From: Anaeramoeba ignava BMAN
Lineage: Eukaryota > Protista > Anaeramoebae
Direction: 5' to 3'
Assembly: GCA_028826165.1 (NCBI GenBank)
Contig: JAPDFW010000099.1
Coordinates: forward strand, 124,001-188,000
Length of the DNA: 64,000 nucleotides
The notes under the pieces: model-generated
The model's database searches: none
Told to the model about the DNA's origin: nothing
The model's input: the letters and a program-made list of their open reading frames with translations, nothing else
In this document: in pieces, positions 24,067 to 48,780 of the stretch
How positions within the stretch are numbered: position 1 is the first letter of the stretch
Layout: every line of letters begins with the position of its first letter
Translations under genes and position numbers: made by a program

Positions 24067-24154
24067 TTTTTTCTTCCATTCTTTTTCAAATTCTCAATTA
24101 AAAAATTATTTAAAATCCCAAAATTTTTTTTTCATTTTTTTTTCTTTTTTAAAA

Positions 24155-25906
24155 ATGAATGATTGTTTATTTTTTGGAAGAAATTATCAACCAACTCTTA
24201 TCAGAAATAAATCATATGAAATAACAAAACCAATTCAATTTAAATTTGAAAATGAAAAACAAATTAAACAAATTTCATCAGGAAGTTATTCAATAATTTT
24301 CCTTTTCAAAAATGGAAAAGCAATAGAATATTTAAATGAAAATGATTTAAAACAAAATCCTTCAAAAATCCAAATTGAAGAAAATATTCAAAAAATAACT
24401 GTTGGTTTTCAAAATGAAGCTATTTTAACAATAGAAGGAAATGTATTTGCCAAAGGAAAAGATATTAATCCAAATAATCCAAAAGAATTTATCAATATTT
24501 CATCATTAATTGAAGATACAAATGATAAAATAATTGAAGATATTGTTTCTGGACACAGTTCGATTTACTTATTAACTTCAAATCAAAATGCTTATGGAAT
24601 TGGTTCAAATCAAAATGGTCAACTTGGTTTTGATTCTGAAACACTTAATGAAACACAAAAGCCAATTTTAATAATGAAAAATGTTTCTAAAATATTTTCA
24701 GGAAATACTTCGAATTCTATTTTTCTCTTAAATTCAAATCAAGAATTATTTGGATGCGGAAATAATAAATTTGGCCAACTTGGACTAGGAGAATCAAGAA
24801 GAAAAATAAAAATCCAAAAATTAACACAATTACAAAATATTCCAAAAGGCAAAATAATTGATATTCAATGTGGATCGACTCATTCAATAATGTTGATTGA
24901 AAATGAAAATCAAAATCAAAATCCAAAAAGAAAACTTTATTCATGTGGAAATTATGAATATAATGGACTTGGCCAACATGCTGAAAAAAGTTATGAATTT
25001 ACTGAAATCAAATTAACTTTATTCGAAAATGATTATATTATTGATTTTTCTGTTGGAAATGCTCATACTTTGATTTTAACTTCCCATTTAAAATTAATTG
25101 GTTTTGGAGGTAATTTATTTGGTCAATTAGGAACTGGAAAGACAAATCGGAGTCAATTAATTCCAATTCAAATTGAACTTCCTAAATTAAGATTTAATAA
25201 AGATATTTCTAGTTATCATATTTCTTGTGGATATCGAAATTCATTTATTTATTATTCTCCTTTTTCTTTTTCCAATCTTGAAGAAGATTTGATAAAATTA
25301 TTTGAAAGAAAAGAATTTTGTGATATTTCATTTAAAACCAAAAATGGAGAAATAATCAAAGCTCATAAATTAATATTAAAATATAGATTAAATCAAAATC
25401 AAAATAAAATTGAAAAACTTCAAGAAATTATTTCAAAAAAATCAATTAAAGAATCAAATCAAATATTTGAAATGATTTATTCAAATAATTCTAAAATAAA
25501 TCCAAAATTATATTCAGAAATTAAAGAAATTATAAATTCAAATGAAAAAATTGAAGAAACAATGAAAAGAATTTATTTAAATGAAAATGAAAATGAAAAA
25601 GATTTTATAATTGAAAGAAAAGAAAAGAAATATAAATTTCCTAAATTAATATTAATAATGAGAAGTGAATTATATCGAGGAATGTTTTTATCTGTAACTG
25701 AAGATAAATCAAATAAAGTTACAGATTATAGTGAATTAAGTAATAAATCATTTCAAATATTTGAATATTGGATTTATTCAAATAAAATTAAAGAAGGAAT
25801 TCAAATTACACAAGAAATTATTGATGAAATTCAAATTGGAATTGATTATTTTCAATTAAATCAAACATATCCAAATTTATTTGATTTATTAATTAACAAA
25901 TTTTAA
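24155..25906 (+). CDS. RCC1-repeat beta-propeller + C-terminal tandem BTB/POZ protein (copy 1)
   Basis: RCC1 motifs GxNxxGQLG and IxCGxxHS are present. BTB motifs are FCDISF...IKAHKLIL and KDFII...FPKLILIMRSELYRGMF. Intronless, 583 aa. Confidence 0.93.
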   Translation: MNDCLFFGRNYQPTLIRNKSYEITKPIQFKFENEKQIKQISSGSYSIIFLFKNGKAIEYLNENDLKQNPSKIQIEENIQKITVGFQNEAILTIEGNVFAKGKDINPNNPKEFINISSLIEDTNDKIIEDIVSGHSSIYLLTSNQNAYGIGSNQNGQLGFDSETLNETQKPILIMKNVSKIFSGNTSNSIFLLNSNQELFGCGNNKFGQLGLGESRRKIKIQKLTQLQNIPKGKIIDIQCGSTHSIMLIENENQNQNPKRKLYSCGNYEYNGLGQHAEKSYEFTEIKLTLFENDYIIDFSVGNAHTLILTSHLKLIGFGGNLFGQLGTGKTNRSQLIPIQIELPKLRFNKDISSYHISCGYRNSFIYYSPFSFSNLEEDLIKLFERKEFCDISFKTKNGEIIKAHKLILKYRLNQNQNKIEKLQEIISKKSIKESNQIFEMIYSNNSKINPKLYSEIKEIINSNEKIEETMKRIYLNENENEKDFIIERKEKKYKFPKLILIMRSELYRGMFLSVTEDKSNKVTDYSELSNKSFQIFEYWIYSNKIKEGIQITQEIIDEIQIGIDYFQLNQTYPNLFDLLINKF

Positions 25907-26610
25907 TTCAAATTTAAAATTAAAATTAAAATTAAAATTAAAATTAAAATTAAAATTCAAAATTAAAATTAAAATTAAAATTAAAATTAAAATTAAAATT
26001 AAAATTAAAATTAAAATTAAAATTAAAATTAAAATTAAAATTAAAAATTAAAATTAAAATTAAAATTAAAATTAAAATTAAAATTAAAATTAAAATTAAA
26101 ATTAAAATTAAAATTAAAATTAAAATTAAAAATTAAAATTAAAATTAAAAATTAAATTAAAAATTAAAATTTAAATTAAAATAAAATTAAAAATCAAAAA
26201 TCAAAATTAAAATTAAAATTAAAATTTTAAAATTATTTTAAAATTTTACTTTTTAAAAATTAAAATTCGTAAAATTCAATAAAAATAAAAAAAAAATTAA
26301 AATAAAAATAAAATAAAATTAAAATTAAAAAAATAAAATTAAAATAAATAAATAAAATTAAAAAAAATAAATAAAAATTAAAATTAAAATTAAAAATAAA
26401 TTAAAAATTAAAATTAAAATTAAAATTAAATTAAAATTAAAATTAAAATTAAAATAAAAAAAAAATTAAAAAAAAATAAAATAAAATTAAAATAAAATTA
26501 AAAATCAAAATAAAAATAAAAATTAAAAATAAAATTAAAATTAAAATTAAAATTAAAATTAAAATTAAAATTAAAATAAAATTAAAAATAAAAATTAAAA
26601 AATTTTAAAA
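25907..26610. repeat. (TTAAAA)n microsatellite
   Basis: Direct sequence. The same repeat follows the other two RCC1-BTB copies. Confidence 0.9.
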
Positions 26611-26659
26611 TTATTTTTATTTTTTTTTTACTTTTGATTAAATTCGTTATTCAATAAAA

Positions 26660-27448
26660 ATAAAAAGTGGAATAAAAATAAATAAAAATAAATATATATA
26701 AATATATATAAATAACCTAGATAAATGAAATTAAAAAATAAGAAGAAAAAAATAAATTTAAATTAAATTAAATTAATTAATCCTAAATAATTATAATTAA
26801 ATAAAAGTGGAATAAATATAAAGTGGAATAAAAATAAATAAATAAAAATATAAATAACCTAGATAATAAATAAAAAAAAAGAAGAAAAAATAAATTAAAT
26901 TAATTAAAAAATAATTAAAAAGTGGAAAAATAAATTAAAATTTAAATTAAATTAATTAATCCTAAATAATTATAATTAAATAAAAGTGGAATAAATATAA
27001 TTAAAAAGTGGAATAAATAAAAATAAATAAATATATAAATATATATAAATATATAAATAACCTAGATAAATGAAATTAAAAAATAAGAAGAAAAAAATAA
27101 ATTTAAATTTAAATTTAAATTAATTAATCCCAAATAATTATAATTAAATAAAGTGGAATAAATATAAAGTGGAATAAAAATAAATAAATAAAAATAAAAA
27201 TAAAAATAAATAAATATAAATATATAAATAACCTAGATAAATGAAATTAAAAAATAAGAAGAAAAAAATAAATTAAAATTAAATTAAATTAATTAATCCT
27301 AAATAATTATAATTAAATAAAAATGGAATAAATAAAATAAATAAAATAAAAATAAAAAAATATAAATATATATAAATAACCTAGATAAATGAAATTAAAA
27401 AATAAGAAGAAAAAAATAAATTAAATTTTAAATTAAATTAATTAATCC
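26660..27448 (+). repeat. Tandem array D (5 units, 142-203 bp) abutting the tRNA
   Basis: TAACCTAGATAA occurs with CCTAG at 26716, 26858, 27061, 27232 and 27380. Four units end in AATTAATTAATCC. Confidence 0.9.
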
Positions 27449-27518
27449 CGGGTAGCTCAGTCGGTAGAGCGTTTGGCTTTTAACCAAAATGTCGTCGGTT
27501 CGAGCCCGGCCTCGGGAG
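27446..27518 (+). tRNA. tRNA-Lys (anticodon UUU)
   Basis: The acceptor stem is TCCCGGG/CTCGGGA, the D arm GCTC..GAGC and the anticodon arm TTTGG-CTTTTAA-CCAAA. The T loop is GGTTCGAGCC, and a poly-T terminator follows. Confidence 0.97.
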
Positions 27519-28279
27519 TTATTTTTTTTTAGTTATTTTTTTTTATTTTTATTTTTTTTTTTTTATTTTTGTTTTATTTTTATTTTAATTTAAAGAAAAA
27601 AAAAGTGGAATTTAATTTAATTCTCCAAAAAAAAAATTTTTTTCCTTTTTCTTCTTATTTTTATTTTTTTATTATTTAAATCAAAATCAAAAATAAAAAT
27701 AAATTTGGAATTAATTTAATTTTCAAAAAGAAATAATTTAGAATTTAGAATTTAAAAATTCAAAAATTCAAAAATTCAAATTTTTAAAAATAAAATAAAA
27801 GAATTAAAAGAAAATAAAAATTTTTAAAAATAATTTCTTTTTCTTTTTCTTTTTCTTTGAAATTTTTTTTTGTTAAGATTGATTTAAAATCAAAATGGAA
27901 ATTTAGGGAAAATTTTCCTTAAATTTAAAAATTAATTTTGAAATGTTCAATAATAATTTTTTTTTTGTTGAATTAATTTGAATTGAAAATATCCTTTTTT
28001 TTTTTTAATAAATTAAAATTGATTTATTAATAAAAATAAGAACAAAACAAAACAAAAAATTGATTTATTTATTTAAATTACAAAAATCAAAAAATTTTTC
28101 AATTTTCATTAGAAACAGAATTTATTCATAAAAATATCATTTTATTAAATTCTCTAAAAAATTTCAAATAATAATAATAATTTTATTAAATAAATGTGAT
28201 AAAATTAAATTTTCAATATTTAAATTTAATCGAAAAAAAAGGAAAATATTATTTATTTTGAAAAGTGGAATTTGTGTTA

Positions 28280-29045
28280 ATTTATTTTATTTCATAATTT
28301 AAAATAGAAATTAATTATAATTTATTTATAATTTATTTTTAAAATATATCAAAATATTTATAAAATTGATTAATATCTTAATATTTATTATTTTAATTTC
28401 TATATTTTATTTATTAAATATTTTAATTTATTTTATTTCAAAAATTTAAAATGGAAATTATTTATAATTTATTTTATAATTTTAAAATATAACAAAATAT
28501 TTATAAAATTGATTAATATCTTAATATTTATTATTTCAATTTCTATATTTTATTTATTAAATATTTTGATTTATTTTATTTATAATTTTAAAATTTATTT
28601 TAATTTATTTTTAAAAATATCAAAATATTTTAAAATTGATTAATATAATTAATAATTTAATTTTTATATTTTTATTTAAAATATTTTATTTATTTTATCC
28701 CAAAATTTAAAATTTATTATAATTTATTTATAATTTATTTTTAAAATTATATCAAAATATTTATAAAATTGATTAATATCTTAATATTTATTATTTCAAT
28801 TTCTATATTTTATTTATTAAATATTTTGATTTATTTTATCCCAAAATTTAAAATAGAAATTATTTATAATTTATTTATAATTTATTTTAAAATTATATCA
28901 AAATATTTATAAAATTGATTAATATCTCAATATTTATTATTCCAATTTTTATATTTTATTTATTAAATATTTTGATTTATTTTATTTCATAATTTAAAAT
29001 GGAAATTAATTATAATTTATTTATAATTTATTTTTAAATTATAAA
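28280..29045. repeat. Tandem array B, ~5 x 127-146 bp
   Basis: The marker AAAATTGATTAATAT occurs at 28362, 28505, 28632, 28765 and 28911. Confidence 0.9.
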
Positions 29046-29342
29046 TTTATTGTTATTTCTTTTCTCAAATTTTTTTTTCCTTTTTTTTGTTTAAATAAAA
29101 AATAAAAAGTGGAATTTGATCAAAAAAAAAAGGAATAAAATAAAATAAAATAAAAAATTGGATTATGTCACTCATTTTTTAATTTATTTTTTTTAATTAA
29201 AATTAATTTAAATTGAATGATGTCATTCATTTTTATTTTATTGATTTAAAAGAAAAAAAAAAGAATAAAATTTTTTTCATTTTTTTCATTTTTCTTTCTT
29301 TTTTTTTCTTTTAAATTTGTTTAAAAATAAAATTTTTAAATA

Positions 29343-32300
29343 ATGAATTCAAACAAAAAATTAAATAAAGTTTATAAAGCAATTAAAACAAATAATCTTA
29401 AATTTTTTGATTCAATTCCAACTTTAAGAGGCTCAAAAAAAATTGAAAAAGAAAATGAATCTTTTATATTTTATGCTCTAAAAAACAATTCATCAAATGA
29501 AATTATTCAAAAACTTATTGAAAAAGGAACAAACCTAAATTGTGTTGATTATTATAAAAATACACCTTTACATATTGCTTTACAATATAAATATTCAAAA
29601 GAAATTATTGAATTATTGATTTCCAAAGAATCTAATATTAATTCCAAAAATAAACAAAATGAAACACCTTTACATATTGCTTTACAATATCAAAATTCAA
29701 AAGAAATTATTGAATTATTAATTTCTAAAGGAGCTGATCTTAATTCCAAAAATAATAAAAATGAAACACCTTTACATATTGCTTTACAATATCAAAATTC
29801 AAATGAAATTATTGAATTATTAATTTCTAAAGGAGCTGATCTTAATTCCAAAAATATATGGTATGAAAAAACACCTTTACATATTGCTTTACAATATAAA
29901 TATTCAAAAGAAATTATTGAATTATTAATTCCCAAAGAATCTGATATTAATTCCAAAAAATAAATGGAATAAAACACCTTTACATATTGCTTTAAAAAAT
30001 GAAAATTCAAAAGAAATTATTGAATTATTAATTTCCAAAGGAGCTGATATTAATTCCAAAAGTATATGGGATGAAACACCTTTACATTTTGCATTGAAAA
30101 ATAAATATTCAAATGAAATTATTGAATTATTAATTTACAAAGGAGCTAATATTAATTCAAAAAATTATCAAAATGAAACACCTTTACATTTTGCATTGAA
30201 AAATAAATATTCAAATGAAATTATTGAATTATTAATTTACAAAGGAGCTAATCTTAATTCCAAAAATAATAAAAATGAAACACCTTTACATATTGCTTTG
30301 AAAAATCAATATTCAAATGAAATTATTGAATTATTAATTTCCAAAGAATCTAATCTTAATTCCAAAAATAATAAAAATGAAACATCTTTACATATTGCTT
30401 TACAAAATCAATATTCAAATGAAATTATTGAATTATTAATTTCCAAAGGATCTAATATTAATTCAAAAAATAGATGGAATAAAACACCTTTACATATTGC
30501 TTTACAAAATAAATATTCAAATCAAATTATTGAATTATTAATTTACAAAGAATCTGATATTAATTCCAAAAATAATCAAAATGAAATACCTTTAGATATT
30601 GCTTTACAAAATAAATATTCAAATCAAATTATTGAATTATTAATTTCCAAAGGATCTAATATTAATTTAATGCATAGATGGAATGAAATACCTTTACATA
30701 TTGCTTTACAAAATAAATATCCAAATCAAATTATTGAATTATTAATTTCCAAAGAATCTAATATTAATCCCAAAAATAATCAAAATGAAATACCTTTACA
30801 TATTGCTTTACAAAATAAATATTCAAATGAAATTATTGAATTATTAATTTCCAAAGAAGCTGATATTAATTCCAAAAATAATCAAAATGAAACACCTTTA
30901 CACATTGCTTTAAAAAATAAATATTCAAATGAAATTATCAAATTATTAATTTCCAAAGGAGTTGATATTAATTCCAAAAATAATCAAAATGAAACACCTT
31001 TACATATTGCTTTACAAAATCAATATTCAAATGAAATTATCAAATTATTAATTTCCAAAGAATCTGATATTAATTCCAAAAATAATCAAAATGAAATACC
31101 TTTACATATTGCTTTACAAAATCAATATTCAAATGAAATTATCAAATTATTAATTTCCAAAGGATCTGATATTAATTCCAAAAATAATCAAAATGAAATA
31201 CCTTTACATATTGCTTTACAAAATAAATGTTCAAATCAAATTATTGAATTATTAATTTCTAAAGGATCTGATATTAATTCCAAAAATAAACAAAATGAAA
31301 TGCCTTTACATATTGCTTTACAAAATCAATATTCAAATCAAATTATTGAATTATTAATTTCCAAAGGAGTTGATATTAATTCCAAAAATAATCAAGATGA
31401 AATACCTTTACATATTGCTTTACAAAATAAATATCCAAATCAAATTATTAAATTATTAATTTCCAAAGGAGTTGATATTAATTCCAAAAATAATCAAAAT
31501 GAAATACCTTTACATATTGCTTTACAAAATAAATATTCAAATGAAATTATTGAATTATTAATTTCTAAAGGATCTGATATTAATTCCAAAAATAATCAAA
31601 ATGAAATACCTTTACATATTGCTTTACAAAATAAAAATCCAAATGAAATTATCAAATTATTAATTTCCAAAGGAGTTGATATTAATTCCAAAAATAATCA
31701 AAATGAAATACCTTTACATATTGCTTTACAAAATAAATATTCAAATCAAATTATTGAATTATTAATTTCCAAAGATTCTAATCTTAATTCAAAAAACTAT
31801 TGGAACGAAATACCTTTACATATTGCTTTACAAAATAAAAATTCAAATCAAATTATTGAATTATTAATTTCCAAAGGAGTTGATCTTAATTCCAAAAATA
31901 ATCAAAATGAAATACCTTTACATATTGCTTTACAAAATAAAAATCCAAATGAAATTATCAAATTATTAATTTCCAAAGGATCTGATATTAATTCAAAAAA
32001 TAAACAAAATGAAATACCTTTACATATTGCTTTACAAAATAAAAATTCAAATGAAATTATTGAATTATTAATTTCCAAAGGATCTGATATTAATTCAAAA
32101 AATAATCAAAATGAAATACCTTTACATATTGCTTTACAAAATAAATATTCAAATCAAATTATTGAATTATTAATTTCCAAAGAATCTGATATTAATTCCA
32201 AAAATAATCAAAATGAAATACCTTTACATATTGCTTTACAAAATAAATATCCAAAAGAAATTATTGAATTATTAATTTCCAAAGGATCTGATATTAATTC

Positions 32301-34182
32301 CAAAAATAATCAAAATGAAACACCTTTACATATTGCTTTACAAAATAAATATTCAAATCAAATTATTGAATTATTAATTTCTAAAGGATCTGATCTTAAT
32401 TCCAAAAATAATCAAGATGAAATACCTTTACATATTGCTTTGAAAAATAAATATCCAAATCAAATTATTGAATTATTAATTTCCAAAGGATCTAATCTTA
32501 ATTCAAAAAATAATCAAAATGAAATACCTTTACATTTTGTTTTAAAAAATAAATATTCAAATCAAATTATTAAATTATTAATTTACAAAGGATCTGATCT
32601 TAATTCCAAAAATAATCAAAATGAAATACCTTTACATTTTGTTTTAAAAAATAAATATCCAAAAGAAATTATTGAATTATTAATTTCCAAAGGATCTGAT
32701 ATTAATTTAAAAATAGATGGAAATGAAATACCTTTACATTTTGCATTGAAAAATAAATATCCAAATCAAATTATTGAATTATTAATTTCTAAAGGATCTA
32801 ATATTAATTCCAAAAATAATCAAAATGAAATACCTTTACATATTGCCTTAAAAAATAAATATCCAAATCAAATTATTGAATTATTAATTTACAAAGGATC
32901 TGATATTAATTCAAAAAATAATGAAAATCAAATACCTTTACATATTGCTTTGAAAAATAAATATCTAAAAGAAATTATTGAATTATTAATTTCCAAAGGA
33001 TCTGATGTTAATTTAAAAAACCAATGGAATCAAATACCTTTACATATTGCTTTGGAAAATAAATATCCAAATGAAATTATTGAATTATTAATTTGCAAAG
33101 GATCTGATCTTAATTCAAAAAACAAATGGAATGAAATACCTTTAAATATTGCTTTAAAAAATCAAAATTCAAATGAAATTATTGAATTATTAATTTCCAA
33201 AGGATCTAATATTAATTTAAAAAGCAAATGGGATGAAATACCATTAGATATTGCTTTACAAAATAAATATTCAAATGAAATCAAAATTCTTTTAATGAGA
33301 GATTTGAATATTTTTGAATTAGAAAAAAATCGAATTACTCAAGAAATGATTGATTTATTTCCAAAAATTTATTCATTTAATGAAGATTTAAACAATTTTT
33401 TGAAATCAAATGAATTTAAAGATATTGAAATTAAAAGTAATGATGGATCAATAATCAAAGTTCATAAACAAATTTTATTAATTAGATTTAATAATAATCC
33501 AAAAATTTTAACAAAATTTATCAATATTTGCAGAAGAAAACCAAAAGAAATTATTCAATTTGCATTAAATTTTCTTTATACAGGATTTATTGATTTTGAT
33601 AAATTTATTGAAAAATTTAATCAAAAATTTATTCAAAAAAAATCACAAATTTATTCAGATTATAAATTCTTTTTTTCAAATGAAATTGAATTTGAAGAAC
33701 AAAAAAAAGAACAAGAATTAATTTTAAATGAAATTGAAAATAAAAATGAAAAATATGAAAAAATATTAATTTATGATTTATTTAAAGAAAATGGATTTGA
33801 TTCCAAATGGATTAAAGAAAAAGAAGGAATAAGAGGAATATTAAAAGATTTTGGAAAATTATATGAACAAAATGAAACCAAAGATTTTACAATAATTATT
33901 GAAGAAAAAGAAATCAAAGTTCATAAATTAATATTACAAATAAGAAGTGAATTATTCAAAGGAATGTTTTTATTAAATACATCAGATTCAACTAATCAAG
34001 TTCATGATTATTCAGAAAAATCATTTGAAACAATTAATCAATTAATTTATTTTCTTTATAATGATAAAATTGATGAAACAAAAATAACCAAAGAAAATAT
34101 TTCAGAATATATTGATATTTCAGAATATTATCAATTAAATCAAAATTCAATTTTTGATAAATTTTTACTTAATTTTGTTTAA
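29343..34182 (+). CDS. Ankyrin-repeat (~36 x 34 aa) + C-terminal tandem BTB/POZ protein
   Basis: The 102-bp units read xPLHIALxNKYSNxIIELLISKGSDINSKNxxNE. BTB motifs are FKDIEI...IKVHKQIL and TKDFTI...IKVHKLILQIRSELFKGMF. ORFs 29343-29963 and 30094-34182 join if one A is removed from the run at ~29955-29960. Confidence 0.9.
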
Positions 34183-34220
34183 AAAAAAAATTTGAAGAAT
34201 AAAATTTGAATAAAATTTTT

Positions 34221-36487
34221 TTAATTTGAAGTTTTGAAGAAAATAATTGTTTTTCGATTATTTTTGTTTTTTGGATCAGGAATCATTTTCATGGTATTTT
34301 CTAAAAATCTTGGAATTGCTTTTCTGAAATTATTTCTTGGTTTATTTCTTGATTTCTTTTTAATTTGAGAATTTTCATTTCTTTTTCTGAATTTTGATCA
34401 ATAATATCAAGAATTTTTAAATCAATTTCAACTTTTTCTGGAACATTTTTGGAATGTTTAAAATCTTTAAAAGTTGTTTTTGTCCAACCTTTAATTAATC
34501 CAGGATATAATTCTGCAATGATATCTAATCTTTCACCATGAGATTGATTTAAAGAAAATGTTTTTTGTTTTTTTCATTTTCATTTTGAATTTCATTTTGA
34601 ATTTGAATTTGATTTTGATTTTGATTTTTGAAAATTGATTTTGATTTTGATTTTCTTTTTTTGTTTGTTTTTTTTTTAGAATATTGAGTGTTTTTTCCAC
34701 TATTTTGAACAAAATTCTGATTTTTTTTCTGATCTTTAATCGAAGATCGATTATCAAGATCAGAAAAATTATTTGGGTTTATTTTTCCTTTTCTTCCATC
34801 AACAGGAGCTGTTAATGAAGGAAAAGGAAAAAGATTTGAATTAGGTCGTTTTGAATTAAAATGGTTAGGTCGTTGTAAATTTTGATTTGTGGATTCAAAT
34901 TTAATTTGGTTTTGATTTGGTAATTTAATTCGATTTAGATTTTGATTTTGATTTTGATTTTTTGATTTAAATTCAAATTCAAATTGATTTTTTGATTCAA
35001 ATTTAATTTGGTTTTGATTTGATTTTGATTCAAATTGATTTTGGTTTTTTGATTCAAATTGATTTTGGTTTTTTGATTCAAATTCATTTTGATTTAGATT
35101 TGGTGATTTAGATTCAATTTCATTTTTTGATTCAAATTGATTTTGATTTGTTGATTTAATTTGATTTTGATTTATTGATTTAAATTGATTTTGATTTATT
35201 GATTCAAGTTGATTTTGATTTATTGATTTAAATTGATTTTGATTTATTGATTTAAATTGATTTTGATTTATTGATTTAAATTGATTTTGATTTATTGATT
35301 CAAATTGATTTATTGATTCAAATTGATTTTGATTTATTGATTGATTTTTTGATTGAAATTGATTTTGGATTTATTGATTCAAATTGATTTTGATTTATTG
35401 ATTTATTGATTCAAATTGATTTTGATTTTTGATTTGTTGATTTAAATTGATTTTGATTTATTGATTTAAATTGATTTTGATTTATTGATTCAATTTGATT
35501 TTGGTTTATTGATTTAAATTGATTTTGATTTATTGATTTAAATTGATTTTGATTTATTGATTCAATTTGATTTTGGTTTATTGATTTAAATTGATTTTGA
35601 TTTATTGATTTAAATTGATTTTGATTTATTGATTTAAATTGATTTGGATTTGGATTTAATAATTCAAATTGATTTTGATTTTTTGATTTAAATTTATTTG
35701 GATTTGGATTTAATAATTCAAATTGATTTTGATTTATTGATTCAAATTGATTTTGATTTATTGATTCAAATTGATTTTGATTTATTGATTCAAATTGATT
35801 TTGGTTTATTGATTTAATTTATTTTATTGATTCAAATTGATTTTGATTTATTGATTCAAATTGATTTTGGTTTATTGATTTAAGTTGATTTATTGATTCA
35901 AATTGATTTTGATTTATTGATTTAAGTTGATTTTGATCCATTGATTTAAGTTGATTTTGATTTATTGATTTGAGTTGATTTTGATTTATTGATTTGAGTT
36001 GATTTGGAAAATTATAAAGTTCAGGATCAAGTTCAAGTTCAATTTTAGGATCAAATTCAGGAACATCAAAACCTTCATCAAAATGACAAGTAGCACCAAA
36101 CAAAGGAAAAAGTTCATTATCGATAAAGCAATCTGAATTAGAAGAAGACTTTTGAATGTTATCTCCAATTCCAACTGAAGGAAAATTTGCAAAATAATTT
36201 TCAGTGTCAATTTCATTTTGACTTTGATTTAAAAAGGAAAGGTCAACAGGACTACCATTTTGACTTTGATTTAAAAAGGAAAAGTCAACAGGATTAACAT
36301 TTTGACTTTGATTTATAAAGGAAAAGTCATCAGGATTAACATTTTGGAGCTGATTGCCAATGCCAAGATCACTAACAAATTCATTATCATTTCCATTTTG
36401 ATTTTGATTTTGATTTCCATTTAGATTTCCATTTAGATTTCCATTTAGATTTTCTTTTTGAAACATTAATTCTGGAAAAGGATTCAT
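34221..36487 (-). CDS. Hypothetical N/Q-rich low-complexity protein with a short C-terminal globular domain
   Basis: ORF 35819-36487 continues, with frameshifts, through (KSINQNQF)n repeats to ERLDIIAELYPGLIKGWTKT...KVEIDLKILDII and probably KPRNNFRKAIPRFLENTMKM. The end coordinate depends on a 1-nt correction. Confidence 0.6.
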
Positions 36488-36655
36488 TCACCTAAAAAGA
36501 AAAAAAAACAACACAAACACAAACACAAAAAAAATAAAAAATAACAAAAAGAAATTTAATTAAAAAAAGGAAAAAAAAAATGAAAAAAAAAATTATCCAC
36601 TTTTTTAATTAAAATTTCTTTTTCTTCTTTTCCTTCTTTTCTTTTCTTTTTAAAA

Positions 36656-38441
36656 ATGAAGAATGAAATTTTATTTTTTGGTTTAAATCAATATCCAATT
36701 CTTATTAAAAAATGAACCAAAAAAAATAAAAAAACCAATTCAATTTAAATTTGAAAATGAAAATGAAAATGAAAATGAAAAACAAATTAAACAAATTTCA
36801 ACAGGAAATTATTCAACAATTTTCCTTTTTAAAAATGGAAAAGCAATAGAATATTTAAATAAGCAATATTTAAATCAAAATCCTGAAAAAATCCAAATTG
36901 AAGAAAATATTCAAAAAGTAACTATTGGTGAACGAAATGAAGCTATTTTAACAAAAGAAGGAAATGTATTTGCAAAAGGAAATAATATTAATCCAAAAAA
37001 TCTAAAAGAATTTATCAATATTTCATCATTAATTGAAGATAAAAATGATAGAATAATTCAAGATATTGTTTCTGGAGAATATTCAATTTATTTATTAACT
37101 TCAAATCAAAATGCTTATGGAATTGGTTGTAATCAATATGGTCAACTCGGTTTTGATTCTGAAACACTTAAAAAAACAAAAAAACCAATTTTAATGATGA
37201 AAAATGTTTCTAAAATATTTTCAGGAAATTATTCAAATCATGTTTTTCTTTTAAATTCAAATCAAGAATTATTTGGATGTGGAGATAATTACCGGAGTCA
37301 ACTTGGATTAGGAAATTCAATAATAAAAGAAGCAAAAATCCAAAAATTAACTAAAATCCAAAATATTCCAAAAGGCAAAATAATTGATATTAAATGTGGA
37401 TTTGGCCATTCAATAATGTTGATTGAAAATGAAAATGAAAATGAAAATGAAAATCCAAAAAGAAAACTTTATTCATGTGGGAATTATCTATATAATGGAT
37501 TTGGCAAAGATGAAGAAGATACTCATGAATTTACTGAAATCAAATCATCTTTATTTGAAAATGATAATATTCTTGATTTTTCTGTTGGATTCGATCATAC
37601 TTTGATTTTAACTTCTAAATCAAAATTAATAGTATTTGGAGATAATTTTTATGGTCAATTAGGAACTGGAGATGCAGAATATCAATCAATTCCAATTCAA
37701 ATTGAACTTCCTAAATTAAGATTTAATGAAAATATTTCAAATTATCATATTTCTTGTGGTCGTGATAGATCATTTATTTATTATTCACCTTCTTTTTCCA
37801 ATCTTGAAGAAGATTTGATAAAATTATTTGAAAGAAAAGAATTTTGTGATATTTCATTTAAAACCAAAAATGGAGAAATAATCAAAGCTCATAAATTAAT
37901 ATTAAAATATAGATTAAATCAAAATCAAAATGAAATTGAAATTGAAAAACTTCAAGAAATTATTTCAAAAAAATCAATTAAAGAATCAAATCAAATATTT
38001 GAAATGATTTATTCAAACAGAATAATAAATCCAAAATTATATTCCGAAATTAAAGAAATTATAAATTCAAATGAAAAAATTGAAGAAACAATGAAAAGAA
38101 TTTATTTAAATGAAAATGAAAATGAAAAAGATTTTATAATTGAAAGAAAAGAAAAACAATATAAATTTCCTAAATTAATATTAATAATGAGAAGTGAATT
38201 ATATCGAGGAATGTTTTTATCTGTAACAGAAGATACTTCAAATAAAGTTACAGATTATAGTGAATTAAGTAATAAATCATTCCAAATATTTGAATATTGG
38301 ATTTATTCGAATCAAATTAAAGATGAAATTCAAATTACACAAGAAATAATTAATGAAATTAAAATTAAAATTAAAATCAAAATTAAAATCAAAATCAAAA
38401 TTAAAATCAAAATTAAAATTAAAATTAAAATTAAAATTTAA
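36656..38441 (+). CDS. RCC1-BTB protein copy 2, C-terminus truncated (possible pseudogene)
   Basis: The ATG at 36656 gives MKNEILFFG. After an extra A at ~36710 the sequence is collinear with the paralogues. The 3' end runs into (AAAATT)n after ITQEIINEI. Confidence 0.85.
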
Positions 38442-38483
38442 AATTTCAAAAAATATTTTTTTCATTTTTTTTCTTTTTTAAAA

Positions 38484-40337
38484 ATGAATGAAATTTTATT
38501 TTTTGGTTACAATAACGCTCCAATATTTATCAAAAATGAACCAGATAAAATAAAAAAACCAATTCAATTTAAATTTGAAAATGAAAATGAAAATGAAAAT
38601 GAAAATGAAAATGAAAATGAAAATGAAAATAAAAATGAAAATGAAAATGAAAATGAAAATGAAAATGAAAAACAAATTAAACAAATTTCATCAGGAAATT
38701 ATTCAACAATTTTCCTTTTTAAAAATGGAAAAACAATAGAATATTTACATAAGCAATATTCAAATCAAAATCCTGAAAAAATCCAAATTGAAGAAAATAT
38801 CCAAAAAGTAACTATTGGTGAACGAAATGAAGCTATTTTAACAATAGAAGGAAATGTATTTGCCAAAGGAAATAATATTAATCCAAAAAATCCAAATAAA
38901 TTTATCAATATTTCATCATTAATTGAAGATACAAATGATAGAATAATTCAAGATATTGTTTCTGGAGCTTGTTCAATTTACTTATTAATTTCAAATCAAA
39001 ATGCTTATGGAATTGGTTCAAATCAATATGGTCAAGTTGTTTTTGATTCTGAAACACTTAAAGAAACACAAAAACCAATTTTAATGATGAAAAATGTTTC
39101 TAAAATATTTTCAGGAAATAATTCAAATTTTGTTTTTCTTTTAAATTCAAATCAAGAATTATTTGGATGTGGTGATAATTTTCAGGGTCAACTTGGATTA
39201 GGAAATACAATGAATGGAAAAAAAATCCAAAAATTAACTAAAATCCAAAATATTCCAAAAGGTAAAATAATTGATATTCAATGTGGAAATGGTCATTCAA
39301 TAATGTTAATTGAAAATGAAAATGAAAATGAAAATGAAAATCCAAAAAGAAAACTTTATTCATGTGGAAATAGATACTATAATGGACTTAACAAACTTAT
39401 ATATGAATTTACTGAAATCAAATTATCTTTATTTGAAAATGATGGTAATATTCTTGATTTTTCTGTTGGATATTATCATACTTTGATTTTAACTTCCCAT
39501 TTAAAATTAATTGGATTTGGAAGCAATTCTTATGGAGAATTAGGAAATGGAGATACAGATGATCAAAGAATCCCTATTCAAATTGAACTTCCTAAATTAA
39601 GATTTAATGAAAATATTTCCAATTATCATATTTCTTGTGGAGAATTCAGATCATTTCTTTATTATTCTCCTTTTCTTTCTTCTTTTTCCAATCTTGAAGA
39701 AGATTTGATAAAATTATTTGAAAGAAAAGAATTTTGTGATATTTCATTTAAAACAGAAAATGGAGAAATAATTGAAGCTCATAAATTAATATTGAAATAT
39801 AGATTAAATCAAAATCAAAATCAAAATGAAAAACTTCAAGAAATTATTTCAAAAAAATCAATTAAAGAATCAAATCAAATATTTGAAATGATTTATTCAA
39901 ACAGAATTATAAATCCAAAATTATATTCTGAAATTAAAGAAATTATAAATTCAAATGAAAAAATTGAAGAAACAATGAAAAGAATTTATTTAAATGAAAA
40001 TGAAAATGAAAAAGATTTTATAATTGAAAGAAAAGAAAAACAATATAAATTTCCAAAATTAATATTAATAATGAGAAGTGAATTATATCGAGGAATGTTT
40101 TTATCTGTAACAAATGATACTTCAAATAAAGTTACAGATTATAGTGAATTAAGTAATAAATCATTTCAAATATTTGAATATTGGATTTATTCAAATCAAA
40201 TTAAAAATGAAATTGGAATTACAAAAGAAATTATTGATGAACTTGAAAGAGGAATTGATTATTTTCAATTAAATCAAACAAATCCAAATTTATTTGATTT
40301 ATTAATTAACAAATTTAATAATCAAAATCAAAATTAA
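38484..40337 (+). CDS. RCC1-BTB protein copy 3
   Basis: Intact 617-aa ORF with the same architecture as 24155-25906. Confidence 0.93.
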   Translation: MNEILFFGYNNAPIFIKNEPDKIKKPIQFKFENENENENENENENENENKNENENENENENEKQIKQISSGNYSTIFLFKNGKTIEYLHKQYSNQNPEKIQIEENIQKVTIGERNEAILTIEGNVFAKGNNINPKNPNKFINISSLIEDTNDRIIQDIVSGACSIYLLISNQNAYGIGSNQYGQVVFDSETLKETQKPILMMKNVSKIFSGNNSNFVFLLNSNQELFGCGDNFQGQLGLGNTMNGKKIQKLTKIQNIPKGKIIDIQCGNGHSIMLIENENENENENPKRKLYSCGNRYYNGLNKLIYEFTEIKLSLFENDGNILDFSVGYYHTLILTSHLKLIGFGSNSYGELGNGDTDDQRIPIQIELPKLRFNENISNYHISCGEFRSFLYYSPFLSSFSNLEEDLIKLFERKEFCDISFKTENGEIIEAHKLILKYRLNQNQNQNEKLQEIISKKSIKESNQIFEMIYSNRIINPKLYSEIKEIINSNEKIEETMKRIYLNENENEKDFIIERKEKQYKFPKLILIMRSELYRGMFLSVTNDTSNKVTDYSELSNKSFQIFEYWIYSNQIKNEIGITKEIIDELERGIDYFQLNQTNPNLFDLLINKFNNQNQN

Positions 40338-40664
40338 AATTAAAATTAAAATTAAAAATTAAAATCAAAATTAAAATTAAAATTAAAATTTAAATCAAAA
40401 TTAAAATTAAAATTAAAATTAAAATCAAAATTTAAATCAAAATTAAAAATTAAAATTAAAATTAAAATCAAAATTAAAATTAAAATTAAAATCAAAATTA
40501 AAATCAAAATTAAAATTAAAATTAAAATCAAAATTAAAATTAAAATTAAAAAAAAATTTTTTGTTTTTAATGATTTTTTGGGATTCATTTTCAAAGAAAA
40601 AAAAATTGCTTTAATTTCGATTTGATTTGTTTTTGAAATGAATGAAATTGCTTTATCAGATCTT

Positions 40665-43600
40665 TTAGTGTTTTTTTGATTTCCTAACCACAATAATCAC
40701 CACAATGATAATTGCAATTGCAACAACTGGAACAACAACAGAAATGGAGATAACTTTAGCATTTGAAGAGCTATTTGCTTTTTCAACAGGAGCAGGTAAA
40801 GTTGTGATTGAAGTGCTTAAAGATAATCCTGAATAAACAGATTCAGAACATTTCCAATCAGCAGAAGCTGAAATGGAAATTTGATAAGTTGTTTCTCCCA
40901 ATAAATTGTAAGATGTGAAACTTGTCATTGCAGCTGACAAACAAATTGATTCTGAATTGTAAGTGAGTGAATATCCTTTCAATCCTTCTGACAATACTAA
41001 AGGTGTCCAATCACATTCAAATCCACAAACTGTTCCACTACAATTAAGTGAAGTAATGCTTCCTAATTTGGGTGTTACTGAAATGGATGAACTAGGAAAT
41101 CCTAAGTATCCAGATTCACAACTTGTGTCTGAACATCCTCGAATTGAAACAAGATATTCAACATTTCCTTGTAATGGAAATACTGATCCAACCATTTGGT
41201 TTCCATTTGGATAAATTGATGTGAAATTTTCCCAATTTATTCCATTATCGATTGAGACTAAATAAGCTTTGATCAAATTTTGATATGAAGATGAGAAAAT
41301 TAGTTCAATTTCTTCAATTTTGGAGACTGATCCATTAACTGAAGGAGCAGGTAAATGTAAAGTTGTTGTTGAAGTGGTTAAAGATAATCCTGAATAATCA
41401 TTATAATCACAATTTGAATCAGCAGAAGCTGAAATGGAAATTTGATAATTTGCTCCTCCCAATAAATTGCCAACAGAATAACTTGTTGCTGAACTTGACA
41501 AACAAATTGATTCTGAATTATAAGTGAGTGAATATCCTTTCAATCCTTCTGACAATACTAAAGGTGTCCAATCACATTCAAATCCACAAACTGTTCCACT
41601 ACAATTAAGTGAAGTAATGTTTCCTAATTTGGGTGTTACTGAAATGGATGAACTAGGAAATCCTAAGTATCCAGATTCACAACTTGTGTCTGAACATCCT
41701 CGAATTGAAACAAGATATTCAACATTTCCTTGTAATGGAAATACTGATCCAACCATTTGGTTTCCATTTGGATAAATTGAGGAGAACTGCTGCCAATTTG
41801 TGCCATTATCGATTGAGACTAAATAAGCTTTTGCTTGAGATATTTTTGAGAAAATTAGTTCAATTTCTTCAATTTTGGAGACTGATCCATTAACTGAAGG
41901 AGCAGGTAAATGTAAAGTTGTTGTTGAAGTGGTTAAAGATAATCCTGAATAATCATTATAATCACAATTTGAATCAGCAGAAGCTGAAATGGAAATTTGA
42001 TAATTTGCTCCTCCCAATAAATTGCCAACAGAATAACTTGTTGCTGAACTTGATAAACAAATTGATTCTGAATTGTAAGTGAGTGAATATCCTTTCAATC
42101 CTTCTGACAATACTAAAGGTGTCCAATCACATTCAAATCCACAAACTGTTCCACTACAATTAAGTGAAGTAATGTTTCCTAATTTGGGTGTTACTGAAAT
42201 GGACGAACTAGGAAATCCTAAGTATCCAGATTCACAACTTGTGTCTGAACATCCTCGAATTGAAACAAGATATTCAACATTTCCTTGTAATGGAGATACT
42301 GATCCAACCATTTGGTTTCCATTTGAGTAAATTGATGTGAAATTTTCCCAATTTATTCCATTATCGATTGAGACTAAATAAGCTTTGATCAAATTTTGAT
42401 ATGAAGATGAGAAAATTAGTTCAATTTCTTCAATTTTGGAGACTGATCCATTAACTGAAGGAGGAGGGAAACGGAGAATTGTGAGAGACATTGTTGAAGA
42501 CAACCCTGAATAATCATTATAATCACAATTTGAATCAGCAGAAGCTGAAACAGAAATTTGGTAATTTGTTCCTCCCAATAAATTGTCAACAGAATAACTT
42601 GTTCTAAGATAAGACAAACAAACAGATGTTGAATTGTAAGTGAATGAATATCCTTTCAATCCTTCTGACAATGCTAAGGGTTCCCAATCGCAATAGAAAC
42701 CATAAAACACAGAAACGCAATTGAGAGAGATGTTTCCTAATTTGGGTGTTACTGAAATGGATGAACTAGCTAATCCTAAGTAGTCGAGTTGACAAGATGA
42801 ATCTGTGCATCCTCGAATTGAAACAAGATATTCAACATTTCCTTGTAATGGAGATATTAATCCAACCATTTGGTTTCCATTTGGATAAATTGAGGAGAAC
42901 TGCTGCCAATTTGTGCCATTATCGATTGATACTAAATAAGCTTCACTGATATCTGGATATAAGGATGCGAAAATGATTTCAATTTGTTCAGGCTGTGAAA
43001 TCCATTCGGAAATATCAGGAGGAGGTAATCGTCCTGTTGATATATTAAGAGTAGAAACGGAACCACAGAAGCCATTCAAATTACATGCTGAAACATTTAC
43101 TTGATAGTTTTGCGACTGGAAATTAGCTCTGAATGATTGGGATGTTGAGTTTGGATAAGAAGCACTTGAATCTTCTTTGGAAGTTGCTTGATAAGTGAAA
43201 TTGTAAAAAGTAGGAGATGATGAAATTGGCGGAGGAGACCAAGAGCAATTAACCAACAAGACATCTGACACGAAACAATCGAAATTAGTGACATTTGGGA
43301 AACCTGTTGGAATTGATGATTTGACTCGCTTGCCTCTGTTTTGATAATCACATTCTTCTGTTGAACAAGCCCACATTGAGACATAATAAGTATATCCGAA
43401 TTCAAGCCCATCGATTTCAAAGGAAGTAGCTGAAGGATCACCAACTGTCACTTCTGAAGGTTCTCCTGATTCTTGTTCATAGCAAATGACATAGTAGGCA
43501 AGATTTGGGATTTCTTCGATAATTTGCACATCGGGATAATCCCAGAAAACCTTGATGTAATCCCGATATCCTTCCAGCGAATAATCCTTAACAGCATCGA

Positions 43601-47208: not shown

Positions 47209-48780
47209 TTAAACGAAATAAGTTTCAAGTTCATCAACAACCCATGAATTGTAAGAACCAGCTAAATAACTTTTTGCTTCATCTGTTCCATAAGTAATTA
47301 GATTAGGTAGATTATAACTTCTACCAAAATTTGAATAACCTGATTGTAAATTAGATTTCACAGCAAAATCAGCTCCTCCACCAAATCTTGCTCCCCAATC
47401 TGACAGATATTCAATTGCATATTGTTCTTCTCCTTGTTTAATTGTAAACTTTGCAGGTATTCTATCTCCTTTATCATTTCTTAATGAAAAAATAAATGCA
47501 TTTGGATCTGTTAAACATCCTGATTTTTCAGAATTCCATCCAACTTGAGTAAAACCTCCAAAAATAAAATTATCTTTTGTTTTGATAATAATTAATGTTT
47601 TTCCTTTCCCATCAACTGCTTTATGCCAATTTTGAGAATTAAATCCATTTATTTTTGCTGAAAATCCTTTTTTCATTTTAGAAAAAAAATCATTATCATT
47701 TATCCATTCTTGTAATTTCTTAACATATTCAATATCTTTCATAATTTCTGAATCTGAAAAAATCTTTTGAAATTGTTTTTTTATTTCTTCAATTTCATCA
47801 AAAATAGGTTTCATTTTTTCATTCTCTGCTTTCAAATTTTGATTCTCTTTCTTCCATTTCTCTTCAATTTCAATTTTCATTTGTTGATTTTGCTTTTCTT
47901 TGTTTTCAATTTCTTTTTGATTATCTTGAATAATTTTGTTTTGAATATCAACTAAAAAAGATTTGGGAAAAAAATCAAATTGTTTTAATTTATCAAAATC
48001 TTGTTTTGAAATTGAATCTTTATCAAATAATGAAGAAAAAGAATGAAATAATCTTTTATTTTCAATTCCCTTTTCTTTTTCTTTTTCTTTTTCTTTCTTT
48101 CCTTTTAATCTTTCATTTCTTTTTTCAATCCAATTATTTAAAAATTGAAAAAAATCAAATTGAAAAATTTCTTTTTTTTCTTGTTTAAATTGAATAAATT
48201 TGATAATTTCTTCTTTAGTTAAATTGAATAAATTCTCATTATTTTGAATTTGGGAAAAATTTTGATTTATTAATTCAAAACATTTTATTTCAATTTCATT
48301 TGAATTTAAATCTCGATTTTGGAATAAAAATTGGAAAAAATTTGAATAATTAATTGAATTTGAAATTTTTTTTTGAATAATTTCTTTCAATAAATTTAAT
48401 TTAAAATAAATTGAAATTTCCAATAATTGGATAAGATTTTCTTGATTATCAAAAGAAATATTTCCATAATAAATATAACTCAAAATTGATTCCATTTCTT
48501 TTTTATTAAATTGATTTAAAAAAATAGAAAGAGATTCTTGCCTTAATGACTCATTAAAAAAAGGAGATCTTGAAGATAAAATTGATTTATGAACTTTAAT
48601 TTCAAAAGGATTTGATTTATTCTCAACAAAAATTGAAAAATCTTTAAATGAATTTCCATTTAAAAGGTTTGAATAATTTTTAATTAAATTTTTTGTTACT
48701 TTTTTTTCTAAATTTTTCATTTCATTTTCATTTTCATTTTGATTTTCATTTTCAATTTGGTTATTATTATTATTATCCAT
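47209..48780 (-). CDS. BTB/POZ-(BACK-like)-coiled coil-TLDc protein
   Basis: The BTB motif is FKDFSIF...IKVHKSILSSRSPFF. The TLDc motifs are GFSAKINGFNSQNWHKAVDGKGKTLIIIKTKDNFIFGGFT, AFIFSL, FGGGADF, YLAG and VDELETY. Confidence 0.92.
   Translation of the reverse strand: MDNNNNNQIENENQNENENEMKNLEKKVTKNLIKNYSNLLNGNSFKDFSIFVENKSNPFEIKVHKSILSSRSPFFNESLRQESLSIFLNQFNKKEMESILSYIYYGNISFDNQENLIQLLEISIYFKLNLLKEIIQKKISNSINYSNFFQFLFQNRDLNSNEIEIKCFELINQNFSQIQNNENLFNLTKEEIIKFIQFKQEKKEIFQFDFFQFLNNWIEKRNERLKGKKEKEKEKEKGIENKRLFHSFSSLFDKDSISKQDFDKLKQFDFFPKSFLVDIQNKIIQDNQKEIENKEKQNQQMKIEIEEKWKKENQNLKAENEKMKPIFDEIEEIKKQFQKIFSDSEIMKDIEYVKKLQEWINDNDFFSKMKKGFSAKINGFNSQNWHKAVDGKGKTLIIIKTKDNFIFGGFTQVGWNSEKSGCLTDPNAFIFSLRNDKGDRIPAKFTIKQGEEQYAIEYLSDWGARFGGGADFAVKSNLQSGYSNFGRSYNLPNLITYGTDEAKSYLAGSYNSWVVDELETYFV

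Follow-up and report, generated by a model that had tools for sequence, protein, structure and literature searches.

The span 24155-40337 of a 64,000-nucleotide (nt) stretch of the Anaeramoeba ignava BMAN genome (GenBank assembly GCA_028826165.1, contig JAPDFW010000099.1, positions 124,001 to 188,000 of the forward strand; hereafter the window, numbered from its first letter) contains three copies, c1, c2 and c3, of a gene that joins an RCC1-like propeller to a tail of two BTB domains. We show that these genes belong to a very large family in which short loops on one propeller face are hypervariable and the tail is almost constant, a pattern that we read as a putative repertoire of substrate receptors for the Cullin-3 (Cul3) ubiquitin ligase. 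In each of the three copies, Pfam recognizes RCC1 repeats and two BTB stretches, and any two of them are 75-84% identical over the propeller and 87-92% over the BTB half. An earlier, sequence-only reading of the window had treated them as three comparable copies. This holds for c1 and c3, which are intact, but not for c2, where a surplus A in the run 36707-36712 brings a stop codon into frame at 36713-36715 and where, from about 38358, an (AAAATT)n microsatellite read as (KI)n takes the place of the last ~25 codons; moreover, the genome holds about 1,150 copies, not three. The variable motifs that this reading had quoted from c1/c2/c3 are all present as written (nine triplets of nine), among them VGFQ/IGER/IGER, SGHS/SGEY/SGAC, CGST/CGFG/CGNG, VGNA/VGFD/VGYY and CGYR/CGRD/CGEF, as well as GNNKFG/GDNYRS/GDNFQG, GNYEY/GNYLY/GNRYY and GGNLFG/GDNFYG/GSNSYG. 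The surrounding DNA (24155-40337) is extremely AT-rich, with a GC content of 9-23% per 2-kb interval. Coordinates of all features are collected in Table 1.

The size of the family was estimated from two conserved 24-mers, counted in the genome assembly with up to 2 mismatches allowed: the propeller marker gives 1,150 matches and the BTB marker 1,232, compared to 0 for the reversed controls. A protein search of the 42.8-Mb assembly, in which 77 matches were scored among 2,829 first-look candidates, returned copies that are nearly all full length and 81-85% identical. Taken together, the family comprises about 1,150 intronless genes, that is, ~2 Mb or ~5% of the A. ignava genome. Tandem arrays are usual, with a second copy no more than 1.5 kb away at 27 of the 30 fetched loci, and (AAAATT)n lies on both flanks of nearly every member (further stretches in the window are at 38358-38443 and 40338-40437); these brackets are a plausible substrate for unequal crossing-over. 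Family genes also share a leader of 30-40 nt with TCATTTT ~20 nt before the ATG, the last ~30 nt of which are 80-99% conserved in ungapped register across 32 paralogues. This T-rich leader is possibly the core promoter or 5' untranslated region of the duplication unit, and it resembles the short initiator-type promoters of parabasalids.

Automatic annotation has scattered the A. ignava proteins of this family over names such as "claret isoform a," "btk-binding protein-related" and "regulator of chromosome condensation," and the best relative among those listed from A. flamelloides is a 1,590-amino-acid (aa) protein with 32% identity. The main text of the Anaeramoeba genome paper never names BTB, RCC1, cullin or ubiquitin, and its supplements hold them only in general family and lateral-transfer tables (PMC11550330). 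In the literature that we searched, we found no description of an RCC1-BTB repertoire in A. ignava and none linking Anaeramoeba with such a BTB family, the one co-mention having BTB in an unrelated context; the family is apparently undescribed. Several proteins at its margins deserve mention. Three A. ignava proteins of 838-1,096 aa named "protein aardvark" (P0123, P0124 and P0127) carry the same RCC1-BTB body, 51-60% identical, behind an extra N-terminal region and seem to represent an older family branch. Dozens of NCBI gene models of 120-160 aa cover the second BTB only (P0426, P0429, P0430, P0437, P0461 and others), some of which recur in identical form in up to 44 places. These could be truncated models of copies that are damaged or mispredicted, or else a BTB-only subfamily. 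Finally, 9 of 73 family open reading frames (ORFs; L008, L016, L025, L032, L037, L043, L063, L066 and L068) end in a C-terminal extension with a polybasic stretch and a CaaX box (…KKEKCLIF or …CSIF), a motif that suggests prenylated, membrane-anchored members; the window copies are without it.

Most copies have open reading frames. A premature stop is found in 1 of the 75 best-scoring copies, which are a biased sample for open frames, and in the unselected copies—the neighbors lying in the flanks of loci L001-L030—a frameshift or stop occurs in ~9 of 36, some of these in A-runs, where they could be assembly errors. Given how far the copies have diverged at synonymous sites, a premature stop would be expected in more than 97% of them under neutral evolution. 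Because about three-quarters of the unselected copies are nevertheless open, we conclude that selection holds most copies open and that a considerable minority is decaying, in the manner of birth-and-death families.

To describe how the copies differ, we aligned 66 full-length paralogues, on which all statistics of variation, selection and composition are based, and called a column variable at an entropy of at least 2 bits and constant below 0.5 bits. This separates 38 variable from 418 constant columns, with a pairwise amino acid difference of 0.80 in the former and 0.03 in the latter, a contrast well outside what chance would give. In every blade, the variable columns form patches of 2-3 residues, located just after the glycine of the GxxH/S hairpin and within the GxNxxGQLG loop, and a few more lie at the far end of the latter loop. 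Each patch exists in 32-57 versions among the 66 copies, and the 38-residue strings formed by the variable columns are different in all 66, with a median difference of 31 of 38 positions. The variable residues are rich in Tyr (17%) as well as in Asn, Ser, Asp and Arg, Ile is nearly absent, and Trp, among the conserved and variable columns of the propeller, occurs at variable sites only. This composition is far from what a neutral model based on the family's own fourfold-site base frequencies predicts, with Tyr at 17% compared to 8%, Asp at 8% compared to 0.2%, Arg at 4% compared to 0.3%, Ile at 2% compared to 22% and Lys at 7% compared to 31%. The sequence-only reading had further noted C/G-rich codons at the variable sites; such codons exist, as in the cac agt tcg of c1 (gga cac agt tcg), but they are not general, given that GC content at third codon positions is 0.063 in variable and 0.064 in constant codons.

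The AlphaFold2 model of c1, built on a 26-sequence alignment (mean predicted local distance difference test score [pLDDT], 88), shows a propeller of seven blades in residues 1-367 and, after it, a helical/BTB tail. Foldseek matches it to RCC1 (1a12; E value, 1.6e-23), and RCC1, the RCC1-like domains (RLDs) of HERC2, RPGR and UVR8 reach template modeling scores of 0.7-0.8 relative to the target. Among Pfam profiles, RCC1 scores 102 bits with a cut-off of 21.7 and RCC1_2 scores 62 bits, and WD40_RLD, at 148 bits, is slightly below its cut-off of 150. In the modeled strand order, the two variable loop types together occupy alternate loops of the beta-meander, and the intervening loops, on the opposite face, are invariant. 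Because the variable loops alternate in this way, they are all predicted to lie on one face of the propeller, a placement consistent with the HMMER alignment to UVR8: the variable pairs 241/242, 302/303 and 360/361 fall on W233/R234, 285/R286 and W337/R338, and the variable residues 203, 266 and 319 on W198, W250 and W302. These UVR8 residues (W233/R234, W285/R286, W337/R338, W198, W250 and W302) make up its dimer and partner interface.

Codon comparisons also separate the loops from the rest of the gene. Over 2,145 pairs, the non-synonymous difference (pN) at the 38 variable codons is 0.50 (0.83 corrected), compared to a synonymous difference (pS) of 0.087 at the other codons. The latter stays mostly between 0.05 and 0.13 per 30-codon interval and reaches 0.22 in one propeller interval (columns 391-420). 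In the BTB half, pN is 0.01-0.06 and pS 0.07-0.11, that is, a non-synonymous-to-synonymous ratio (omega) of ~0.1-0.4, and the constant columns of the scaffold have an omega of 0.17. The tree of the copies is star-like, with terminal branches adding up to 4.6 and internal branches to 0.83, and by parsimony counting on this tree, non-synonymous changes are in Bonferroni-significant excess at 70 codon columns, reaching ~9 times the synonymous rate; 61 of these columns belong to the propeller. Stronger homogenization of the BTB half is ruled out at synonymous sites, where pS is similar along the gene and no lower in that half. The best reading of these codon patterns is that the loop sites are under diversifying selection and that the scaffold and BTB half are under purifying selection. 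Thus, the central claims of the sequence-only reading—a constant BTB module attached to a propeller that is hypervariable on one face, with diversifying loop sites—carry over from three copies to 66. Most differences at variable codons involve more than one nucleotide.

The constant half of the protein is a candidate Cul3-binding module. Pfam BTB scores 41-43 bits with a cut-off of 20.5 in two stretches per protein, the first of which is atypical in that it covers profile positions 3-79 only, and the second BTB aligns, weakly, to that of KBTBD4 (E value, 0.004). Among the ~8 cullin loci of the A. ignava genome, L073 encodes a 736-aa protein (P0272) that best matches human Cullin-3 (428 bits compared to 363 for Cul4) and is annotated as "cullin-3a-related"; its gene has introns, and the protein is both encoded in the genome and present in the EukProt transcriptome. 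Other loci were considered and rejected as Cul3, L074 being Cul1/2-like and L071, L072 and L076 Cul4-like. We then predicted the complex of Cul3 P0272 residues 1-380 with c1 residues 368-583 in three runs. The median score was 0.70, with 0.00 for the best control, a mark that in calibration was reached by 51 of 78 solved complexes and by 2 of 108 mismatched pairs. The three runs coincide in 80% or more of their contacts, with a partner pLDDT of 77 or more. In these models, Cul3 residues 42-55 and 109-121 contact residues 505-526 and 564-567 of the second BTB, and 17 of the 19 predicted contact residues are invariant or nearly so in the 66 copies. The two Cul3 segments correspond to helices H2 and H5, which are the ones used in solved BTB-Cul3 complexes. 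The second BTB is thus predicted to dock on H2/H5 in the canonical manner, a prediction that shows likeness, not binding. In agreement with it, human RCBTB1, which has the same domain order, is reported to be a CUL3 substrate adaptor (PMC4974088). The Cullin-3 link drawn in the sequence-only reading gains a Cul3 gene in the genome and a predicted docking with clean controls, at the level of a model.

Given these results, we incline with moderate confidence to the view that the family is a germline repertoire of ~1,150 Cul3 substrate receptors whose loops are under diversifying selection, likely against foreign or selfish proteins. In such a system, one propeller face with 14 short loops, two per blade, would form the recognition surface and carry the hypervariable residues (38 with at least 2 bits, up to ~70 by the tree-based test), while an almost invariant BTB-linker-BTB tail would dock, through its second BTB, on helices H2/H5 of the cell's Cullin-3, such that every copy would deliver a different protein to the ligase. 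The family would grow and decay by birth and death, through tandem duplication between (AAAATT)n microsatellites; purifying selection would preserve the scaffold and tail, and diversifying selection would drive the loop residues and keep them apart. The targets would most likely be foreign or selfish proteins that change fast, for instance from prey or symbiotic bacteria, from viruses or from mobile elements. We infer that bound proteins are ubiquitinated, what kind of proteins they are and that the family is expressed, and an immune function is suggested by analogy. The term "antibody-like," used in the sequence-only reading, suits the architecture, with its constant framework and Tyr-rich variable loops, but not the origin of the diversity, which is germline encoded in ~1,150 genes; nothing indicates somatic diversification.

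Several observations weigh against this repertoire view. First, the 66 copies analyzed are those most similar to c1 and represent ~6% of the family. Second, if gene conversion homogenizes the scaffold, pS is no clock and the omega values are inflated; likewise, local synonymous diversity is 3-4 times higher beside the variable codons, which reduces the non-synonymous excess there from 6-9-fold to ~2-3-fold. Third, about one-quarter of the unselected copies are damaged, as is c2. Fourth, the Cul3 docking is a model and, since BTB-Cul3 complexes have been solved, its pass may partly be the model's memory. Fifth, a transcriptome (EukProt) source is lacking for all 219 family proteins listed, of which 120 are full length and 99 are shorter, whereas Cul3 and distant single-copy RCC1-BTB paralogues of A. 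ignava have one. The missing records may reflect low or conditional expression, or the failed transcript assembly of ~1,150 near-identical genes.

One possible, though unlikely, alternative keeps the binder repertoire on a Cul3 adaptor but aims it at the cell's own proteins, such as Rab and other small GTPases or symbiosome trafficking factors, or at self/non-self recognition in mating or among kin. RCC1 propellers classically bind small GTPases on this very face, and the polybasic and CaaX ends of 9 of 73 ORFs suggest membrane-anchored members. The Anaeramoeba genome paper moreover describes large Rab, TBC and HOPS/CORVET expansions (PMC11550330). However, ~1,150 receptors are far more than any endogenous target family in that paper, and a near-saturating, Tyr-rich diversification, with 66 of 66 strings different, is typical of conflict and not of housekeeping.

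We also considered that the family might have arisen by recent selfish or neutral amplification ("genomic drift") of one RCC1-BTB gene through microsatellite-mediated unequal crossing-over, with loops that are unconstrained or mutation-prone and most copies functionless. The star-like tree and low synonymous divergence, the (AAAATT)n on both sides of each gene, the damage in ~25% of unselected copies and in the pseudogene c2, the lack of any transcriptome record among the 219 listed proteins and the raised synonymous diversity beside variable codons would all fit such a history. Yet relaxed constraint leads to an omega of ~1, not to a pN of 0.50 with a pS of 0.087, nor to a 2-3-fold excess over the local rate; it predicts stops in more than 97% of copies, most of which are open; and it accounts neither for the scaffold omega of 0.17 nor for a composition of variable sites so far from the AT-biased neutral expectation. 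We therefore regard drift as improbable.

How the loop diversity is generated is a related question, on which the synonymous sites are informative. Codons of invariant residues within two codons of a variable codon have a synonymous diversity 3-4 times higher than elsewhere, and this persists within one amino acid (Gly, 0.233 compared to 0.096; Asn, 0.088 compared to 0.010). The flanking variants are tied to particular variable codons, GGA occurring with AGA in 16 of 16 cases; the Gly codon at 24758-24760, before residue 203 of c1, is an example of such a flanking codon. Copies with a common micro-haplotype are closer to each other only within 10 codons or less and not beyond, linkage between common variants is at background level beyond ~3-10 nt, and all four gametes are seen in 90% of site pairs. 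Because flanking variants are linked to the variable codons and linkage is short-range only, loop patches have probably been exchanged between paralogues over very short tracts, multi-nucleotide mutation being the alternative. Under patch exchange, the loop diversity would still have to be maintained by selection. A stronger version, which we think has little chance of being correct, holds that the diversity comes mainly from a directed process, either templated micro-conversion or localized multi-nucleotide mutagenesis, making the family a self-shuffling cassette system. It would account for the linked synonymous flanks (GGA-AGA, 16/16), for sharing over 10 codons or less, with linkage gone beyond ~3-10 nt and a four-gamete fraction of 0.9, and for the involvement of more than one nucleotide in most variable-codon differences, but shuffling alone does not yield a composition rich in Tyr, Asp, Arg and Trp and poor in Ile and Lys, and it leaves the invariant strands and opposite-face loops unexplained. 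In bacterial diversity-generating retroelements, adenine-only mutagenesis of AAY codons cannot give Lys, Glu or Gln, which together make up 18% of the variable residues here, and this composition rules out mutagenesis of that kind.

More tentatively, and as a reading that we consider unlikely in its entirety, such exchange can be combined with the proposed receptor function. The family would then be a self-shuffling intracellular recognition system encoded in the germline and diversified by micro-conversion, with few copies expressed at once or on challenge, a prenylated subset on phagosome or symbiosome membranes, and bacterial, viral or mobile-element proteins as targets tagged for destruction; expression of few copies at a time, or on challenge, would explain the absence of the family from the bulk transcriptome. 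Least probable is that the BTB tail does not recruit Cullin-3 at all but oligomerizes the propellers or recruits another partner, the proteins being scaffolds, decoys or inhibitors: numerous BTB proteins are not Cul3 binders, the first BTB is atypical (Pfam positions 3-79 only) and similarity to solved BTB domains is weak (E value of 0.004 to KBTBD4), but the canonical docking of BTB2 on Cul3 H2/H5 is predicted at 0.70 compared to 0.00 for controls, the predicted contact residues are invariant, and RCBTB1, of the same architecture, is a reported CUL3 adaptor (PMC4974088).

The neighborhood of the three copies includes other BTB genes. An ankyrin gene with a BTB-insert-BTB tail sits between the RCC1-BTB copies (Table 1), and its 33-aa repeats are nearly identical, differing mainly at the hairpin tips (NQNE, RWNK, YWNE, KWDE, DGNE). 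In layout, its tail equals that of the RCC1-BTB genes, but the two are only 32% identical (BLASTP), and one constant BTB module common to both kinds of gene was accordingly rejected: the architecture matches, the sequence does not. The gene may be another design of the type "variable binder + BTB." Just 5' of the gene, at 29343-29963 (+), is an ankyrin-only ORF, and a 222-aa Asn/Gln-rich low-complexity ORF with tandem "NQLKSI" repeats and no credible family match lies just upstream of c2, at 35819-36487 (−). Further downstream, the 1,785-aa ORF at 40665-46022 (−) has fibronectin type III and BNR/Asp-box matches and a GC content of 26-36%, compared to 8-23% around the copies; because its GC content is well above that of the RCC1-BTB span, it is possibly laterally acquired. 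The gene at 47209-48780 (−), encoding BTB and TLDc in 523 aa, is a different kind of BTB gene.

Table 1. Features of the RCC1-BTB locus in the window and residues of c1 that are variable or predicted to contact Cul3
Feature	Position	Strand	Evidence or properties
c1 gene, RCC1 propeller + BTB-BTB, intact, 583 aa	24155..25906	+	ORF, Pfam, AlphaFold2 mean pLDDT 88
c1 seven-bladed RCC1-like propeller, residues 1-367	24155..25255	+	AlphaFold2, 26 strands in beta-meander; Foldseek
c1 constant BTB-linker-BTB module, residues 368-583	25256..25903	+	two Pfam BTB stretches; low pN
c2 gene, damaged	36656..38441	+	ATG at 36656; body open in another frame from 36687
c3 gene, intact, 617 aa, in tandem with c2	38484..40337	+	ORF, Pfam; conserved leader 38444-38483 before ATG
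Patch, residues 9-12 (G-R-N-Y-Q; first GxNxx-type loop)	24179..24190	+	entropy 2.7-2.9 bits; omega ~6-7.5
Patch, residues 85-86 (GxxN hairpin)	24407..24412	+	entropy 2.9, 2.7 bits
Patch, residues 134-135 (GxxS hairpin)	24554..24559	+	entropy 3.3, 3.2 bits; omega 7-9
Patch, residues 153-154 (GSNxxGQLG loop)	24611..24616	+	entropy 3.1, 2.5 bits
Patch, residues 185-187 (GNxSNx hairpin)	24707..24715	+	entropy 2.6, 3.4 bits
Patch, residues 203-206 (GxNxxGQLG loop)	24761..24772	+	entropy 2.8, 3.6, 2.2 bits; aligns to UVR8 W198, R200, Y201
Patch, residues 241-242 (GxxH hairpin)	24875..24880	+	entropy 3.3, 3.6 bits; aligns to UVR8 W233/R234
Patch, residues 266-268 (GxxxYNGLG loop)	24950..24958	+	entropy 2.6, 2.2, 3.5 bits; 266 aligns to UVR8 W250
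Patch, residues 302-303 (GxxH hairpin)	25058..25063	+	entropy 2.9, 3.5 bits; aligns to UVR8 position 285/R286
Patch, residues 319-321 (GxNxxGQLG loop)	25109..25117	+	entropy 3.2, 2.8 bits; 319 aligns to UVR8 W302
Patch, residues 360-361 (GxxN hairpin)	25232..25237	+	entropy 2.7, 3.1 bits; aligns to UVR8 W337/R338
Predicted Cul3 contact segment 1, residues 505-526 (ELYRGMFLSVTEDKSNKVTDYS)	25667..25732	+	14/16 contact residues with entropy <=0.23 bits
Predicted Cul3 contact segment 2, residues 564-567 (DYFQ)	25844..25855	+	identical in 66/66 copies; lost in c2
Conserved T-rich leader (…TTTCATTTTTTTTTCTTTTTTAAAA)	24115..24154	+	directly 5' of c1 ATG; likewise before c3
(AAAATT)n microsatellite	25907..26006	.	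directly after c1 stop codon
Ankyrin (~35 repeats) + BTB-insert-BTB gene	30094..34182	+	Pfam, BLASTP; sits between RCC1-BTB copies

Among known systems, the family comes closest to the large MATH-BTB and F-box adaptor expansions in Caenorhabditis and rice. As these are summarized in PMC4334554 (citing Thomas 2006, Genome Res 16:1017), they evolve by birth and death, with positive selection restricted to the domain that binds substrate and with the cullin-binding domain conserved, and their proposed role is to recognize proteins of foreign origin and break them down. The A. ignava family shares with them the lineage-specific expansion, birth and death, a binding domain under selection and a conserved, here predicted, cullin-binding domain. 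It differs in that (i) the binding domain is an RCC1 propeller and not MATH or FTH/FBA; (ii) the family is larger, with ~1,150 copies in ~5% of a 43-Mb genome; (iii) its copies are much more alike (81-85% identity), with variable sites in discrete patches of 2-3 residues; and (iv) the host is a free-living anaerobic protist related to metamonads. What is new with respect to known adaptor expansions is thus the propeller fold, the scale and the sharpness with which variable positions stand out, as in a library. A defense role is likewise only a hypothesis for the adaptor families of nematodes and plants.

By domain order, the family resembles animal RCBTB1/RCBTB2 and IBtk, in which BTB domains follow an RCC1-like propeller, and a likeness to IBtk is also found in the name "btk-binding protein-related" given to many members in NCBI/PANTHER. 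However, RCBTB1/RCBTB2 and IBtk are single-copy, conserved proteins with endogenous roles, having neither a paralogue repertoire nor a hypervariable face. UVR8, RCC1 and the HERC2/RPGR RLDs share the same seven-bladed fold, and the positions that vary in A. ignava are the x residues of the GxxH and GWxxxG motifs in the UVR8 interaction face; whereas these are single proteins with one fixed partner surface, the A. ignava surface is diversified over ~1,150 paralogues and fused to BTB. In its overall plan, a constant framework with few hypervariable surface positions rich in Tyr and other residues prone to binding, the family recalls the leucine-rich repeats of plant nucleotide-binding leucine-rich-repeat receptors (NLRs), the B30.2 loops of fish finTRIMs, lamprey variable lymphocyte receptors (VLRs) and synthetic Tyr/Ser-rich libraries. 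Germline-diversified receptor families of this kind also expand in tandem arrays and exchange sequence between copies. The fold and effector arm of the NLR, finTRIM and VLR systems differ from those of the A. ignava family, and VLRs and antibodies are assembled somatically.

If the proposed repertoire is real, about 1 gene in 13 of A. ignava would be a variant of a single ubiquitin-ligase receptor, and the family would be among the largest and cleanest natural "binder libraries" known, with a fixed propeller, one face of which holds ~40 randomized, Tyr-rich positions; protein engineers might find in this scaffold a natural design for propeller-based binders. Should the self-shuffling version also prove true, the family would be a protist equivalent of an immune repertoire and would employ a fold that is not known to serve this purpose. 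The adaptor-defense idea would become testable in a system in which framework and variable positions are unambiguous, and the idea of ubiquitin-adaptor repertoires as an intracellular defense would extend from nematodes and grasses to a deep-branching anaerobic eukaryote with bacterial symbionts.

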